Made by a program: the position numbers and the translations under genes. A stretch of 64,000 nucleotides of DNA, from positions 310,001-374,000 of the forward strand of contig JBLDXI010000024.1 in NCBI GenBank assembly GCA_047495785.1, given 5' to 3'. Within the stretch, counting starts at the first letter, position 1, and every line of letters starts with the position of its first letter. Positions 26,556 through 64,000 of the stretch are shown here, piece by piece. Source of the stretch: Lepidodermella squamata. Taxonomy: Eukaryota; Animalia; Gastrotricha. The notes beneath the pieces are model-generated. The model made no database searches. It saw nothing but the letters and a program-made list of their open reading frames with translations, and was not told where the DNA came from.

Positions 26556-29044
<2,489 letters not shown>

Positions 29045-36607: not shown

Positions 36608-37717
36608 ATGCCCATGAAATTCCTTCTGGCGATAATTATATGTTTAAACCTGGTGAACCATGTCTTTCCTGATAACACCGCAACTCAGCCAAGCCGGCGG
36701 ATATCAACATCTAGTCCTGTTGCCGATAAAGCTACGAAAGCGGTGAGAAATGCGTCGACAACTTCGACCCCCAGGCCATCAACTACGAGAACAACTCCTC
36801 GCCGCTCGACTACGACGAGTCCAATGCCTCCAAGATGTGGGGTTGGGAGTGTTCCATTCGCGCCCCTACTTCGACTACCAACCATGGCTAAAGTGCGCGA
36901 GTTCCCATGGCAAGTTTTGATCGAATCTACTCATAAAGAATACGACTCGGTTCAAAGTTGTGCTGGGACAATCATTTCGCCAGAGTGGGTGCTAACATCA
37001 GCAAGCTGCTTTCAATCAGGTCCTGAACAGTAAGTTCCTTACATAACACTTCAATATCGCTATTTTCTATCTCTTTTATCAAGATTCGAAAGTATCGTGA
37101 TTTCAAATATTTGGAACATAACAACAAGATATGGATCAGTTGTTAGAAAGGCGAAAGCAGTTATAACCCATCCTTATTACGACCCGTCTCAGTCGTCCTT
37201 TGACGTTGCACTCATTCTTGTCGATCAACCCTGGCGTTATGATGACGAAAATCAGTACGGAACGCCGGCTTGCTTACCCGAGCAGTGCTTCGAGTCATTC
37301 GCAGATACAAACACTTTGGGTCAAAATAATTGTGTCACGGTTGGTTGGCAGTCGCTGCTGACTGGCGAGTTCAGAGGTCCTCTGATGAAAAGCAACGTAA
37401 AAACGCCTGCGAGTCAAACTTGCAAAACGAAGCTGGACAAACTGAGCGCCTTTCCCTACTCGGAAGATAAGATTTGTGTTACCGATTTATACGGAGGCGG
37501 ACCTAGTTGCCAGGTTGATGTTGGTGGTGGGCTACTTTGTAAGAATCCATCCAATGGAAACTATGTCCTCGGTGGTATCGCTTCCTTTGTTCAAGACCCG
37601 GAAGGCAGCTGTTTACAGAAAGTAACAGCTCCTTATGTTGTTTACACCAAGGTCTGCATTGTTCGAGGCTGGATCGACAGTGTCATTGCCAACCCAAGCT
37701 CCAGCTCCAGCTCATGA
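36608..37717 (+). CDS. Secreted serine protease homolog (pseudoprotease) with Ser/Thr-rich N-terminal stalk
   Basis: Signal peptide; 54-nt intron 37030-37083; FPWQV, CAGTII, TSASC (His lost), FDVAL (Asp kept), VDVGGGL (Ser>Val); no IVGG activation motif; AATAAA at about 37835. Confidence 0.9.
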
Positions 37718-57029: not shown

Positions 57030-57635
57030 ATGAGGGCTCTAAGCTGCCTGGTGTTAGCTATGATAACGGCTGGCTCGTCTTATTCGGCTAAGTTTATAGA
57101 GACAATTGATGAAGCATCTAGCGGAGCAGAGCCGGTGATTAGAGGCGTATTCGCTGCATCTTTACTCGACGGTATTTTTTTATCCATTGTAGCCTTTTTG
57201 ATGATTTCATTATTAACAGCTGAGATCGATTCAACCACCTTTGCAGTTGAAACTTCAACTACAATAGATCCTTTGAGCTTGTTCCCCGCGGCGGAAGACG
57301 ATGAGAGTGAACAAGACACCGCTGATCGCATGTTTAGGGAGCATCGAACAACGGACCCATTAGTGTATGGGCCAACAACTCCCTCAACGACAGCCAGTAA
57401 GCCATCTACCACAACAAACGTCCCAGTCATTGACAATACAGCACGCAATCTCGCCGGGAATATTGAGCAGAAATTCGACGGCATCGTCGCCACTGCGAAA
57501 ATCGAGGCGAAACGAGTCGTATCATCGGCGGTCAGAAACGTTGTGAACTCAAGCGTGAAGGTTCATAGCTCGACATCATTATTGGCTAGTCTATGCGTCG
57601 CGATAGCTGTTGTTTCTTCATTGCGATCATTCTGA
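57030..57635 (+). CDS. Small mucin/proteoglycan-like surface protein with GPI-type C-terminus
   Basis: Signal peptide; acidic DEASSG (possible GAG site); Ser/Thr-rich middle; ends SLLASLCVAIAVVSSLRSF*; probable in-frame 48-nt intron 57172-57219; AATAAA at about 57763. Confidence 0.75.
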   Translation: MRALSCLVLAMITAGSSYSAKFIETIDEASSGAEPVIRGVFAASLLDGIFLSIVAFLMISLLTAEIDSTTFAVETSTTIDPLSLFPAAEDDESEQDTADRMFREHRTTDPLVYGPTTPSTTASKPSTTTNVPVIDNTARNLAGNIEQKFDGIVATAKIEAKRVVSSAVRNVVNSSVKVHSSTSLLASLCVAIAVVSSLRSF

Positions 57636-58356: not shown

Positions 58357-58457
58357 GGCCATAAAAGCGCGCGCCCACCTGTCAGCGCGTCACGTTCACA
58401 GCCGTAATAACTTATACTAGCTGCGCCATAAATTTTGACCGCGAGAAGTTTTATGGG
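58357..58457. promoter_or_regulatory. Cluster of Cdx/posterior-Hox-type TTTATGG sites upstream of the collagen gene
   Basis: GGCCATAAAA 58357-58366, CGCCATAAA 58424-58432, TTTTATGGG 58449-58457. Confidence 0.35.
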
Positions 58458-58648
58458 CCCTAGCGGTGCCGCTCGCCATACCGTTGGCTACAACGGAATG
58501 ATGTAGCCGCCCGAAATGTTGTGGTATTATTAGCCGCAATACTTGATAATATATCAACCCTAGAGCGCAACGCATCGCGGTAGATGGTTGCCGATTGCGA
58601 GTGAGTAAACGAGTTCAATCAGCGTAAATTTTTGTGACGCGGTGCACA

Positions 58649-61600
58649 ATGAATTTGATTTGTGCACTCAGCTACCTTAATGCTATCATCATTCTTTCTT
58701 CCGGCCAAAGTTTAGTCACGCCATCAGTTGGTAAGTCCCAAACCGCGATGCGTCATTTTGATTCCGAGACTTTCTTTAATTATAGAAGTGAGCTATTTCA
58801 GCCGCCCTATAGCTGACACTTGCAGCATTACCGGCTGTCCAGCTGACCTTTCGTTTCCTCCATGTGGCAACAGTACCCACAAGGGCGAGAAGGGCGACAG
58901 AGGTGATCCCGGTGATAGAGGAGCCGGTGGCGAGCGGGGAGCGGATGGACCAGTTGGTGAACAAGGCGAAAAGGGTGAAATAGGCAACCCTGGACCTCAG
59001 GGTGAACAAGGCGCCAAAGGAGACGATGGAGAACGAGGCGATGCTGGCGAGCTAGGATTCGCTGTAAATTTATTTTCGCACATATCACCGAATCTTTACA
59101 TATGCTATTTTTCAGGGAGACAACGGACGGGCACTTCAAGGTGATCCGGGTGAACCTGGTGACGTTGGTGTTCCGGGAGAGCGTGGTCCTCAAGGCCCGG
59201 CTGGATGTCAGGGCGAGCAAGGTGACCAAGGCGAACGAGGTCCGAAAGGCAGTATCGGCAGTGTCGGGTTGAATGGGGAGCGCGGTCCGAAAGGCGACCA
59301 AGGACCGCAAGGTGACCAAGGCGGTATTGGTCGGCCCGGTGAGTCATTTTTCTCAAGACCTAACCTTGACAATGAATATAAATTTAGGCCCACGAGGACC
59401 AGCTGGGCCGAAAGGGCAGCGAGGTGAGGAAGGGGAAGTTGGCGTCAAAGGTGAGAAAGGAACCCCAGGCGCCCGCGGATCCTTAGGCCTCCGAGGCCCT
59501 AAAGGCCCCCGAGCCAAAGTGGTCAACGGCAAGAATCTGGAAGGCGATAAAGGAGACCAGGGTGATTCAGCCGTATGCAATAAAATACCTGATCGTGAGG
59601 GTGAGAAGGGCGATAAAGGCGATCACGGTCCGCCCGGGCTCAAGGGCCATAAAGGCCAGTCAGGAAGACCCGGTAAGCAAGGCACGTGCCTTTACAGCCA
59701 AGTTACATTCGCCGACATTATCTACCCTCCGCATGCGTATGGCGATCGAGGAGCGCCAGGTCCACTTGGTCGGGGTGCGAAAGGACCGAAAGGAGAGCCC
59801 GTATGTTACTTCGAGTACTCTCATCGCCAATAACTTATTTTGAGCACATAGGGTACATGTGACGATTCGACCTGCCACTGCAAGAAAAATTGTGCTGACG
59901 AAACTGAACGTAAGTTAAAACTAGTTTTATATCTGGCCAAATTACGGCTTATTTTTGTGCAGCCATTTACGAGGAATGCAGAGATAATTTCAATTGTCTG
60001 AACTCGCCGCCCGAAATCGGTGACAACATCGGCAAGCGAGGTCACCCAGGTCGCCCTGGTTCGAAGGGTGACACCGGCCCGCCTGGCCAAGGCTTGAGAG
60101 GTCCCAAGGGTGAGCGTGGCCCTGTTGGAAACCCGTGGCCCGAAGGAAAGCTGTGCGAATGCTGCCCTGATTGTCTGAGATTCGCCAATACCGAAACTTA
60201 CGCTGTTCATTCGTAATTATCTAAATCCCTACCTTAAAAATGTAATGGCCTACTCGTTATTTTTAGGGTGACACCTACGGAAACCCCTAAATGTTACGAC
60301 AGTGATATGGAGCTGTATCGTGGCTACAGTCTCATGCACTACGCTTCATACACACCTTCGCCAACAGTCTCGCAAGACTTGGGTAAGTGATTCTGCCAAA
60401 TAACTATTTCTTTGATGTTTTTTATCTTTCAGGGGACATCGGATCTTGCGTTCCAAATGGCAAGGAAAACGACTTCGCTGCTGTCCCTTTCCAAAGCTGT
60501 TCATCTAGCGAAGAAAAGTGTCGCTTTGCCGAGCGTCGACCGGTGGTTTTATGGCTTTCGAACAGCACAGGAAGTAAGACTCCGAGCATGACGAAATCTT
60601 CACATTTCTAATGCGTCTTTTTTAGGCGAGGGCGTGGGTATGCTCAATGCCGCAGATACCGAGAAGCATGTCAGTCGATGCGTTGCCTGCCGTAGTCGAG
60701 GGGGCGTATTCTTTGTCAATCACACCTTGTCTAAGGAGGAACCAACATGCCCAGACATCACCGAACTTTGGAAAGATCGTTACGGCGGCTTGACTCGCTG
60801 GGAATGGAAGTTGCGTTACACTGGACTTACTTGGGTTATGGTGAGGATCAAGCTTTAAGAAATATCCTGAAACTTGGAATATGTTTATTTTGAGTTTAGT
60901 ATCAATCAAACGATGTCCACGGTGGTAACATGCTTCAGAGCCCTGGATCTTGCTTCCCTGGCGCGTTTAGCAGCACGTTATTTTACGAATGTCAGGGGCC
61001 TGATCGTTGCTACAACCGATTCGGTGAATTCAAAAAGTTTGTTAACCGAAGACATTGAAAAATCTCGAATTGAAGGCATTTCGTTTACGATTAGCTTTTG
61101 GATGATGAATGCAGATGAGGCGAACCGCAGGTTTTACGCCATGAATACCTCAACACCGACCTCACCTACGGGTAAATATCGACGTGAAGACGTATCTCCC
61201 CTCAAAGATTCAGGAATCCTCGCTCGATGCGCTGTTTGGTAAGGATTTAGGTTAAGACAATTGATTATAACTGATGGATTTAAATGCAGTGAACTTGTGC
61301 CTCCGGTTTGTACCAGCTGCAAGATGCCTCATTCTACTGGTTAGTTTATCCATCGATCCGAATCTTATCACCTTAGTCGTTGATAACTTATAGATCACCA
61401 GCTGGATACTTCAGCTGTCAAGTACGTGATGCATTCTCAACGTGCTGGTGGCGACGAGAGCGTGCCAAAATGTTCTGACGAAGCCGACCCGTCCGAGGAA
61501 ACGAAGCCTTTGTGGAGCGGTTACAGTCTTCTCCAAGTTGGCGACAAAATAACGTCGGATCTCGGCGTAACCAGCTCTTGCGTGGCTGATTTCGATAGCG

Positions 61601-62186
61601 CCTCTAATGCCCGATCGGCGAGCAGTGCCGTTAAGGAAAGCACATGGCTAGCTGGTCGCAGCGTTAACGATGAAGATATCAGCATGGACGATGCGCCGAA
61701 ATCAGCCGTGAGCCGCTGTGCCGTCTGTGTATCCCGCTACCCGGTCATCGTGCTACACTCGACTGCTGAAGACGTTGAATCAAAGGGGCCTGACTGCCCG
61801 GATGTCACCGACATAGTGCTGTGGCAGGGTTTCTCGCTGTTGAGCGTCTCTCGTCAGAATAATACCAAACAGGTTGCGTTTTCGACAAGCACTGGTTCGT
61901 GTCTTCGCGACATCACTGACGGGGCTTGTGCTTTGGAATGCTCTGCCGATGGCAAAATTTGCAAGGCCTCGAACTCCACAAAATGGTACGTGAACTTTTA
62001 GCTTCAAAATTTGTTATATATTTGATCGATTTCAGCCACTGGTCACTGCGGCGAAACCATCCGATGTTCGATTCTATAATTCGCACCGGGAAACTGCCGG
62101 AGAATCCTGGCGAGCGGTTAACTTACGATTGGACCCCATTTATGGGTCGGTGTACAGTATGCGCTATCAAATCGGCTGCAATTTAG
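58649..62186 (+). CDS. Short-chain collagen IV/spongin-related protein with about 90 Gly-X-Y triplets and four C4 repeats (two tandem NC1 domains)
   Basis: Signal peptide; N-terminal Cys segment; interrupted Gly-X-Y region. C4 repeats: VHS...LYRGYSLM...QDLGDIGSC...VSRCVAC; VNH...QSPGSC...LARCAVC; MHSQ...LWSGYSLL...VSRCAVC; LHS...LWQGFSLL...STGSC...MGRCTVC. All joined in one frame by short GT-AG introns; AATAAA at about 62325. Confidence 0.88.
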
Positions 62187-62790
62187 ATGGGTGTGTCGCG
62201 TCTTAGGAATGATTTCATGCATATCGCCTGTTTTTTGCTACAAATTGTATGTACCTCTCTGTCGTTGTTTTTTTTTGTCACTTCCGTCGAGTTTCCACAT
62301 ATAGGCCCAGTAAATTTACACTCAAATAAAAGTAACCAACATTTATCAAAATTCTCATCCGATTTATTCAACGACCGAGATGTCAAGCAGTAGAAAATTG
62401 GCAGGTTCCAAATCATTACCGATGTTGTCGATAATGTCAACTTTCGAATATTATATTCACATGCGAAACTCAAAAAACGAGAATAGTAATGTAAATTATC
62501 AATATTTATTATATCGATGTGCTGCCGAGCAAGAGAGAGATAGGTAGAGAGAGACACGGGGATGGCATCGACAAGAATTACAAATGTAAATAAAACAGGA
62601 TTACGCACCGTTTCCTAGAAGAGAAACCGATAATACTTACAGGGCAGAAGAATTCGAGAAGGAAGATTGGCGCATAACAACAATTCAACAATTTATAGTA
62701 GCAAAGCGAACACACATATTACGCGGGTCAATTTTGTGACTTGATTTTTTGTCCAATAAAACGAATTATAGGTATATAAACAACCATATT

Positions 62791-64000
62791 TCAGCTAACA
62801 TTAGTTGTAGCAGCGATAGCCTGGTTGCCACCTGTTGCCGATGAATTGCCAGTCGCGCTCGACGACGCATTAGCCCCAGACGCGTTGTCCTGGTTGCGAC
62901 GCCGGCGACAGAAGCGTTTGTGTTCGTGGTACCAGTGTTCCTGTTGGCAATGCTGGCTGCAATACGCCGTGTTCCAGCAGCACGGGAAAAACGCTTCTTG
63001 GGAGCAATTGACGCACCACTGCTTCTTCTTGACCGCCGCAATCTCTTCAACCTGCTGCCGCTGTAATTTAGCGGTTTCTTCCGCCATTCTCCGCTCAGCC
63101 GTTGCCTGGTCGTTCCGCCTCTCGGCATCGAACTTCTCCTGCATTTGCTTCATTTTACTCTCGAATTCACGCTTCACCTCAACTAGTTTCCGTTCATACG
63201 CTTCGGCACACAAACTACCAGGTGGGCAAGGACCTGTTGATTTGGGCGGTGCAAGCGGAGGAGGGGACGAATGGGCGATCGGCTCGTTTTTCCCTAAATT
63301 GTGGTTTGAGTGGCGAGTCGTTGAGGAAATCGATCGTGCGATAGGTTCGGGTTTAGTCTCCGCTTTCGAGGCTACAGGTGCGTGCGATATACTACGATTA
63401 GTCACCGGCATGATCGGCGAAAGACTTGCGGGAGGTGCCACAACAACTGGGTCAGGTTTTGAGCGAATTTGAGGTGAATGATGCTTTTTTGAAGGCGGTG
63501 CTTCGGCGGCAGAGGAAGGCAGACTTGAACGCTGAGATGATCGAGTCGGCTTTTCATCGCCGTTTTGCGGCTGTTTCGAAGGTTTCACAGCAGTAGCAGG
63601 CTTTTCGGGTAATACAACAGGCTTCTCTGATTCAGCTGGTTTTAATGATCTCCGAGCTGAGGAACTAGTTTTTGGCATCGAGATTTCTTTTGTTAGAACA
63701 GGCAACGCGGGGCTACTAGCAATTATAGCCTCACTGACACTGGCGTCGCGAGAATCGTCGGCGGCCATCGAATTGCTGTTGGTTGGGGTCGGAGTGGATC
63801 GCACCGAAGTCGTAGAAATGCTCTTCCCACGAGCTTTTTTCGCCTTTCCATTACCGCTTGGCACCATCAACGCTGCTTTCTTCGACTTCTCTGTTTCAAT
63901 AGCCGCTCTCCAGTCGGAAACTGCCCACAACGCGTCAACAATTGGTGAAAATTTAGCCGGTCCATCGGAGAGAAATTTTTGCAGCACAGCTAACTCGTCC
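62791..64000 (-). CDS. ZMYND11: ZMYND11/BS69-like chromatin reader, 3' terminal part (5' end outside window)
   Basis: Coiled coil followed by [45 protein letters not shown], matching the ZMYND11-type MYND finger. The frame is open to the window edge. Confidence 0.85.

Follow-up and report, generated by a model that had tools for sequence, protein, structure and literature searches.

Can a natural collagen chain carry two NC1 domains in tandem, and does it do so as one protein? Canonical collagen IV chains end in one NC1 domain, which consists of two C4 repeats, and their helix is approximately 1400 residues long. NC1 is a recognition module that accomplishes chain selection, nucleation of the triple helix, and end-to-end joining of protomers in collagen IV. 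The question is raised by a gene on the plus strand at 58649-62186 of a 64,000-nucleotide stretch of Lepidodermella squamata DNA, referred to here as the window, for which the original prediction proposed a short collagen with four C4 repeats on one chain. We found that the gene is one of a family of short collagen-IV-like chains in which NC1 is doubled; the family is real and conserved, and the literature searched does not describe it. The explanation that we favor, with good confidence, is that of one expressed gene encoding a secreted short collagen-IV-like chain, with a helix of approximately 350 residues and two tandem NC1 domains (NC1-A and NC1-B) joined by a conserved 27-residue linker containing a CxxC motif.

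Three-frame translation of 58500-62400 revealed a split gene on the plus strand, in a genome with very short introns. Contigs from two public runs were aligned to 58400-62600; one run (X1) is RNA in practice, and the other (X2) is unspliced DNA from a close strain. The resulting model has 14 exons and an open frame of 949 amino acids (aa), with the ATG at 58649 and the stop codon ending at 62186, exactly the limits originally predicted. All 13 introns are GT..AG and each is 49-59 nucleotides (nt) long. Spliced X1 contigs skip 11 of the 13 as GT..AG segments of this size, and the model is completed by two predicted introns that flank the 50-nt linker exon and fall within the same size range (51 nt, GTAAGG..TGCAG, and 54 nt, GTTAGT..TTATAG). 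An X1 contig ends at 62345 with a poly(A) run followed by the SMART cDNA oligo, and this was the sole poly(A) loose end among the RNA contigs. It is preceded by 20 nt by an AATAAA, the only one downstream of 59579. Differences between the window and the X1 and X2 contigs were also informative. Among the 40 of 119 differences that were listed, 35 were exonic, and 33 of these 35 were synonymous (17 of 17 in NC1-B). Because of this excess, the 949-aa frame is, as judged from coding changes, under purifying selection. Two local irregularities were noted during modeling. At 60267, the first base of exon 7, the RNA has T and the window has G, a synonymous change (TCG to TCT) that explains an extra T and an apparent GT..GG joint. 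A candidate intron inside 59690-59740 was rejected, since an RNA contig is unbroken there, and the segment is a coding interruption of the helix.

The order of the encoded chain is signal peptide, N-terminal Cys region, interrupted helix, Cys knot, NC1-A, the 27-aa CxxC linker, NC1-B, and a 7-aa tail. When runs of at least 3 are counted, there are 89 Gly-X-Y triplets in eight runs over approximately 350 residues, very near the 90 or so predicted, and the helix is interrupted by a 19-aa segment and a 41-aa Cys-rich segment. All four C4 repeats with the predicted RCxxC ends were present (SRCVAC, ARCAVC, SRCAVC, and GRCTVC, in that order), as were HSQ-type starts (YVMHSQ, YAVHS, and IVLHS). A hidden Markov model (HMM) constructed from 22 single-NC1 homologs matched the 949-aa model twice, each time across all 218 positions of the profile (i-E 2e-29 and 3e-25, with E-values at Z=1e6). 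By this measure, the two-NC1 signal is far beyond chance. The Pfam C4 (PF01413) scan, from which four matches had been expected, matched each repeat; the NC1-B exon gave E 4e-19 in 2 stretches, and matches were weak on the exon pieces of NC1-A (0.0025 for repeat 1; 7e-4 and 0.036 for repeat 2). NC1-B differs in its Cys pattern: the middle pair is missing from repeat 3, and there is one pair more in repeat 4. Only collagen IV NC1 chains were returned by phmmer against the PDB. Likewise, an AlphaFold2 (AF2) model of the NC1-B exon (mean predicted local distance difference test score, pLDDT, 83; predicted template modeling score, pTM, 0.83) had 42 significant matches in the PDB, all of them collagen IV NC1, with TMq 0.71-0.74.

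The original prediction also proposed a search of related genomes for the same architecture, and this search yielded a syntenic ortholog and two paralogs. A HMMER search with the NC1-B exon (1.84 billion representatives) identified a protein with 47% identity, P0001, in whose open reading frame (ORF) ELVPPQCTQCNMPKST is fused directly to NC1-B. P0001 is carried by L001, a 75.6-kb metagenome scaffold from ENA. The ortholog on L001 is complete and open, has 8 exons, shows the same architecture, and keeps every Cys; its linker and NC1-B lie on a single exon. The exon before the linker ends with TG ahead of the donor GTAAGA, and C is the first base of the linker exon, giving a split Cys codon TGC compared to TGT in the window. 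The first 16 residues of the linker are identical at 13 of 16 positions between the two species, and the preceding intron is not conserved. As in the window, the L001 ortholog is followed by a ZMYND11-type MYND gene on the minus strand with PWWP and MYND Pfam matches. The window copy, a ZMYND11/BS69-type MYND zinc-finger gene at 62791-63987 on the minus strand, lies tail-to-tail with the collagen gene.

A second set of relatives was found in L002, which derives from a related metagenome organism. The protein P0002/P0064 is encoded by one uninterrupted ORF of 770 aa, in which collagen repeats are accompanied by four stretches matching Pfam C4 (E 2e-69), and its last exon ends with ISRCIVCKLLINN, then a stop. 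In one ORF, the head-to-head neighbor of P0002 in L002 joins an NC1 through an 18-aa linker to a third C4 repeat, with the remainder after an intron. By these alignments, at least two species and three paralogs have kept the doubled-NC1 layout, and the genes form a small lineage-specific family with at least 3 paralogs in one relative, two of them head-to-head. The two tandem-NC1 collagen genes at L002:240-5524 are approximately 450 bp apart. COL4 alpha1/alpha2 pairs are typically head-to-head. A JGI metagenome scan found no further relatives, a word search with P0002 found no additional tandem protein, and the ESM Atlas had short C4 clusters only, with scores below 0.9. In the database searches, the four-C4 short-collagen layout was found in metagenome-derived relatives only.

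These relatives bear on whether the locus encodes one chain or two products. In the two-product scenario, a short collagen would end at RCAVW and the TAA at 61240-61242, and a separate NC1-only gene or operon cistron would start at the linker or the NC1-B exon. Several observations fit this scenario and weigh against a single chain. X1 depth is zero over 61220-61360: one contig breaks off at 61219, and contigs are found again from approximately 61394-61421. A search of public runs with the linker exon listed no RNA run, but with only 2 words sampled it weighs neither way. The TAA is in frame after the exon 11 donor and directly follows RCAVW when the intron is not spliced, and there may be an intron-retaining isoform with a single NC1. 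Standalone NC1 genes are also known in ctenophores (Fidler 2017, PMC5395295). However, the last Cys codon of repeat 2 is split by the intron (TG/gt...ag/T), and the sixth Cys of the repeat depends on splicing: read-through ends in W and a stop, with loss of this Cys. Both species regain it by splicing, and the T/C difference between their codons is synonymous. The original prediction named a transcript end or restart within 61238-61394 as the sign of two genes. The RNA contigs leave much of that interval uncovered and give no direct evidence against such an end or restart, but no AATAAA occurs in 59579-62325, hence none in 61238-61394, and the only observed poly(A) end is at 62345. Although it would carry 12-14 Cys, a product that began within the linker or NC1-B would be without a signal peptide. 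Together, the lack of an earlier AATAAA and of a downstream signal peptide argues against both an end of the transcript and a credible second start at this point. At the protein level the linker exon is conserved, whereas the intron before it is not, and the NC1-NC1 junction lies within a single ORF in two paralogs. The two halves have similar word depth in the RNA contigs, though this depth measures expression poorly. The linker itself reads as originally predicted, and the spliced frame is open throughout. Five independent lines, none of them an RNA contig across exons 11-12-13, thus favor a single chain: splicing restores the Cys, L001 keeps the junction, the paralogs read through, no transcript end or plausible second start fits there, and the frame is under purifying selection. 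On this evidence the single chain is very highly probable, and two separate products are very improbable.

Conservation is unevenly distributed along the chain. Identity between the window and L001 is 52% in the helix, 71% in C4 repeat 1, 81% in C4 repeat 2, 50% in the linker, 48% in C4 repeat 3, and 44% in C4 repeat 4. In this comparison, NC1-A is the most constrained region and NC1-B the least, although NC1-B keeps all of its Cys and its core motifs. The N-terminal Cys region in exon 2 is conserved in L001; at its N-terminus, a canonical collagen IV alpha chain has a 7S-type domain rich in Cys and Lys. In a maximum-likelihood tree, the NC1 units sat on long branches and most forks were left open, with 2 changes each for the A-units and the B-units; this tree does not separate one from several origins of the duplication. 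Because the A and B units are not sisters within any one protein, the NC1 duplication is not recent according to this tree.

Three further segments of the chain were observed to be distinctive. The 41-aa interruption of the helix at 59855-60030 (aa 334-374) contains eight cysteines, is split over exons 5 and 6, and is kept in L001. This segment could serve as a mini-domain or as a disulfide knot between chains. A Cys cluster, KLCECCPDC, is present at 60136-60201 (aa 410-431), after the last Gly-X-Y triplet and ahead of NC1-A. The cluster reads ICECCPDC in L001, and both L002 paralogs have CC or CxxC equivalents. Canonical collagen IV is not known to have a Cys knot at the junction of helix and NC1. 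In C4 repeat 2, a Trp-rich insert follows LWK at 60760-60834 (aa 566-590), at the position of the canonical LWxGYS, and is nearly identical in L001.

Compared to collagen IV alpha chains (1li1, 1m3d, 5nax, and 8tys), the chain is alike in having two C4 repeats per NC1, HS(Q) starts, LWxGYS/GSC motifs, and RCxxC ends. The 6+6 Cys pattern of NC1-A, the superposition of the NC1-B model (at the TMq given above), and the interrupted helix are shared as well, and the two paralogs in L002 lie head-to-head, as COL4 pairs do. In contrast, the chain has two NC1 domains (four C4 repeats) instead of one, and 89 triplets in approximately 350 residues compared to a canonical helix of about 1400 residues. 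It also differs in the CECCPDC knot at the helix/NC1 junction, the 4+8 Cys of NC1-B, and the insert in C4 repeat 2, and it has no clear sulfilimine Met/Lys at the aligned columns, as far as the numbering that we assume for that pair is correct. Unlike COL4 pairs, the window locus is without a head-to-head partner; no other collagen or C4 gene was found in the 64-kb window, and the upstream neighbor at 57030-57635 is on the plus strand and unrelated. The chain is homologous to collagen IV and probably works like it, while the canonical definition fails on helix length, NC1 number, and gene pairing at the locus.

Other proteins resemble the chain in part. Spongin short-chain collagens share a short helix followed by a C-terminal NC1-related globule, as well as an invertebrate distribution. 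In the literature consulted, spongins are described with one C-terminal domain (Aouacheria et al. 2006, cited in PMC5395295 and PMC12749355), and their NC1 regions are reported to be without HSQ motifs (PMC5395295) and not to match PF01413 (PMC12749355). The present chain matches PF01413, has MHSQ, and carries two NC1 domains, which sets it apart from spongins as they are described there. Engineered single-chain NC1 trimers (6wku, 6mpx, and 8txn) also have NC1 domains head-to-tail on one polypeptide and were the top sequence and fold matches, since several NC1 units align. However, those constructs are artificial, with three NC1 domains nearly directly joined and no helix, whereas the natural chain has two NC1 domains, a Cys-containing linker of 17-27 aa, and a triple helix in front. 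Ctenophores have genes for standalone, secreted NC1-only proteins (Fidler et al. 2017, PMC5395295). These, too, place NC1 outside the canonical setting of one per long chain; in the present family, by comparison, the extra NC1 is fused behind the first NC1 on a collagen chain.

How such chains assemble can be proposed from their layout. As in collagen IV generally, three NC1-A domains would be tied by the helix, and three chains would register through them to give the usual trimeric cap. Each NC1-B, 17-27 residues from its NC1-A, could then join the other two in a second cap, and the conserved CxxC could lock the three linkers by disulfides. A protomer end would thereby carry two NC1 surfaces and could bind two or more partners, or a partner of another kind, and two junctions could produce branching or daisy-chaining into a matrix of short protomers. 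NC1-A is likely the nucleating and registering cap, because it adjoins the helix, evolves slowly, and is preceded by the CxCCxxC knot, and NC1-B would be an added junction module; the division of roles is suggested by the ortholog identities of 71-81% compared to 44-48%. Two results lend this scheme no support. An AF2 model of a tandem pair (paralog P0002:352-770) had pLDDT 25-50 in the first-NC1 half and no credible domain packing, with a root-mean-square deviation of approximately 19 Å from the single-chain trimers; in that run, the MAFFT alignment assigned every single-NC1 homolog to the second NC1, leaving the first half without alignment depth. The sulfilimine pair is one that we take to be Met93/Lys211. 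In hmmalign, the corresponding columns, subject to that numbering, hold V/E and S in NC1-A and neither residue in NC1-B, and a conserved Met of NC1-A lies two columns away. Formation of trimers or hexamers is put forward as a proposal only. A collagen-IV-type matrix rebuilt, in a lineage of small invertebrates, on short protomers with two stacked or adjacent trimeric NC1 caps, and with either two junctions or a self-contained hexamer at one protomer end, is a possibility that we advance tentatively and that is on balance doubtful.

There are two other scenarios for the protomer end. The six NC1 units of one trimer could close on themselves as an intramolecular A3:B3 hexamer, and such a self-capped protomer would end or regulate networks, not extend them. 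This was the first option in the original prediction, whose further suggestions of network bridging and a cuticle or adhesive role are conjectural. Three tandem chains do supply six NC1 units, the number in the collagen IV hexamer, and the engineered trimers 6wku, 6mpx, and 8txn show that NC1 tolerates head-to-tail covalent linkage. However, NC1-A and NC1-B evolve at very different rates, linkers of only 17-27 residues seem short for a face-to-face fold-back (judged from the geometry of the hexamer), the tandem AF2 model is without packing, and the analyses made here gave no positive result for such a hexamer, which we consider unlikely. Alternatively, the chain could be a precursor that is cleaved at the linker to release NC1-B as a free matrix fragment. 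In vertebrates, NC1-derived fragments of collagen IV act freely. The linker is distinct, conserved, and proline-containing, NC1-B evolves faster than NC1-A, and free NC1 domains are known in ctenophores (PMC5395295), all of which would fit cleavage. No protease motif was identified, however, and conservation of the CxxC points to disulfide formation more than to cleavage. Release of NC1-B is improbable, more so than the closed hexamer.

The originally predicted novelty of the architecture held in the literature and databases searched, where no known family has this layout. Full-text literature searches, which are thin on subscription journals, returned no description of a tandem or double NC1 or of a four-C4 chain. 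Likewise, Fidler 2017 (PMC5395295), the Halisarca genome paper, and the preprint on COL4A origins describe no tandem-NC1 chain. The collagen IV and spongin chains described in the literature searched have one NC1 each. The coordinates of the gene and its parts are listed in Table 1.

Table 1. Exons, NC1 domains, and 3' end of the tandem-NC1 collagen gene, in window positions.
Feature	Positions	Strand	Evidence
Exon 1: start codon and signal peptide	58649..58730	+	RNA joint 58729>58785; translation
Exon 2: N-terminal Cys region and start of triple helix	58786..59063	+	RNA, translation; Pfam Collagen E 1e-9
Exon 3: collagenous	59116..59338	+	RNA joints 59063>59116, 59337>59387
Exon 4: collagenous, with 19-aa interruption at 59684-59740	59388..59800	+	RNA contig unbroken over 59505-59800; Pfam Collagen
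Exon 5: first half of Cys-rich helix interruption	59852..59909	+	RNA joints 59800>59852, 59909>59963; kept in L001
Exon 6: remaining Cys-rich interruption, last triplets, KLCECCPDC knot, start of NC1-A (YAVHS)	59963..60212	+	RNA, translation, L001 alignment
Exon 7: C4 repeat 1, N-terminal part	60267..60382	+	RNA joint 60212>60268; Pfam C4 E 0.0025
Exon 8: C4 repeat 1, middle part	60433..60573	+	RNA joints; orthologous L001 exon Pfam C4 E 4e-10
Exon 9: end of C4 repeat 1 (SRCVAC), start of C4 repeat 2, insert of ~15-25 aa after LWK	60626..60840	+	RNA joints; alignments
Exon 10: C4 repeat 2, middle part	60900..61036	+	RNA joints; Pfam C4 E 7e-4
Exon 11: end of C4 repeat 2, stopping on TG of the last Cys codon of ARCAVC	61095..61238	+	RNA contig 61095-61219; donor TG/GTAAGG kept in L001
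Exon 12: 50-nt linker exon with CxxC, outside RNA contig coverage	61290..61339	+	Splice sites; coding conserved in L001
Exon 13: remaining linker, C4 repeat 3, most of C4 repeat 4 (NC1-B)	61394..61985	+	Pfam C4 E 4e-19; PDB phmmer; AF2
Exon 14: end of C4 repeat 4 (GRCTVC), tail AIKSAAI, stop	62036..62186	+	RNA joint 61984>62035
NC1-A, aa 432-686, 12 Cys, canonical 6+6	60202..61290	+	Full-length HMM match i-E 2e-29
NC1-B, aa 714-942, 12 Cys, 4+8 pattern	61426..62162	+	Full-length HMM match i-E 3e-25
AATAAA at 62325 and poly(A) addition site at 62345	62325..62345	+	Poly(A) and SMART-oligo loose end

Other genes were observed in the window. The upstream neighbor at 57030-57635 is a 201-aa ORF with a signal-like N-terminus, a Ser/Thr/Pro-rich middle, and a hydrophobic C-terminus, and its product looks like a small surface protein of the glycosylphosphatidylinositol-anchored or mucin-like type. 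Pfam Trypsin matches at 28226-28822 on the minus strand and 37097-37717 on the plus strand indicate serine protease genes. A scan of the window with Rfam gave no match.

A natural chain with two NC1 domains would be a ready-made experiment on the assembly of covalently tethered NC1 rings, and would give structural work a natural parallel to its engineered single-chain NC1 constructs. It would bear on whether one end of a protomer can make more than one junction, and on how the basement-membrane toolkit is remodeled in miniature animals. If the two-cap matrix is true, it would represent a principle of network assembly unlike the end-to-end joining by one-cap hexamers in every collagen IV described.

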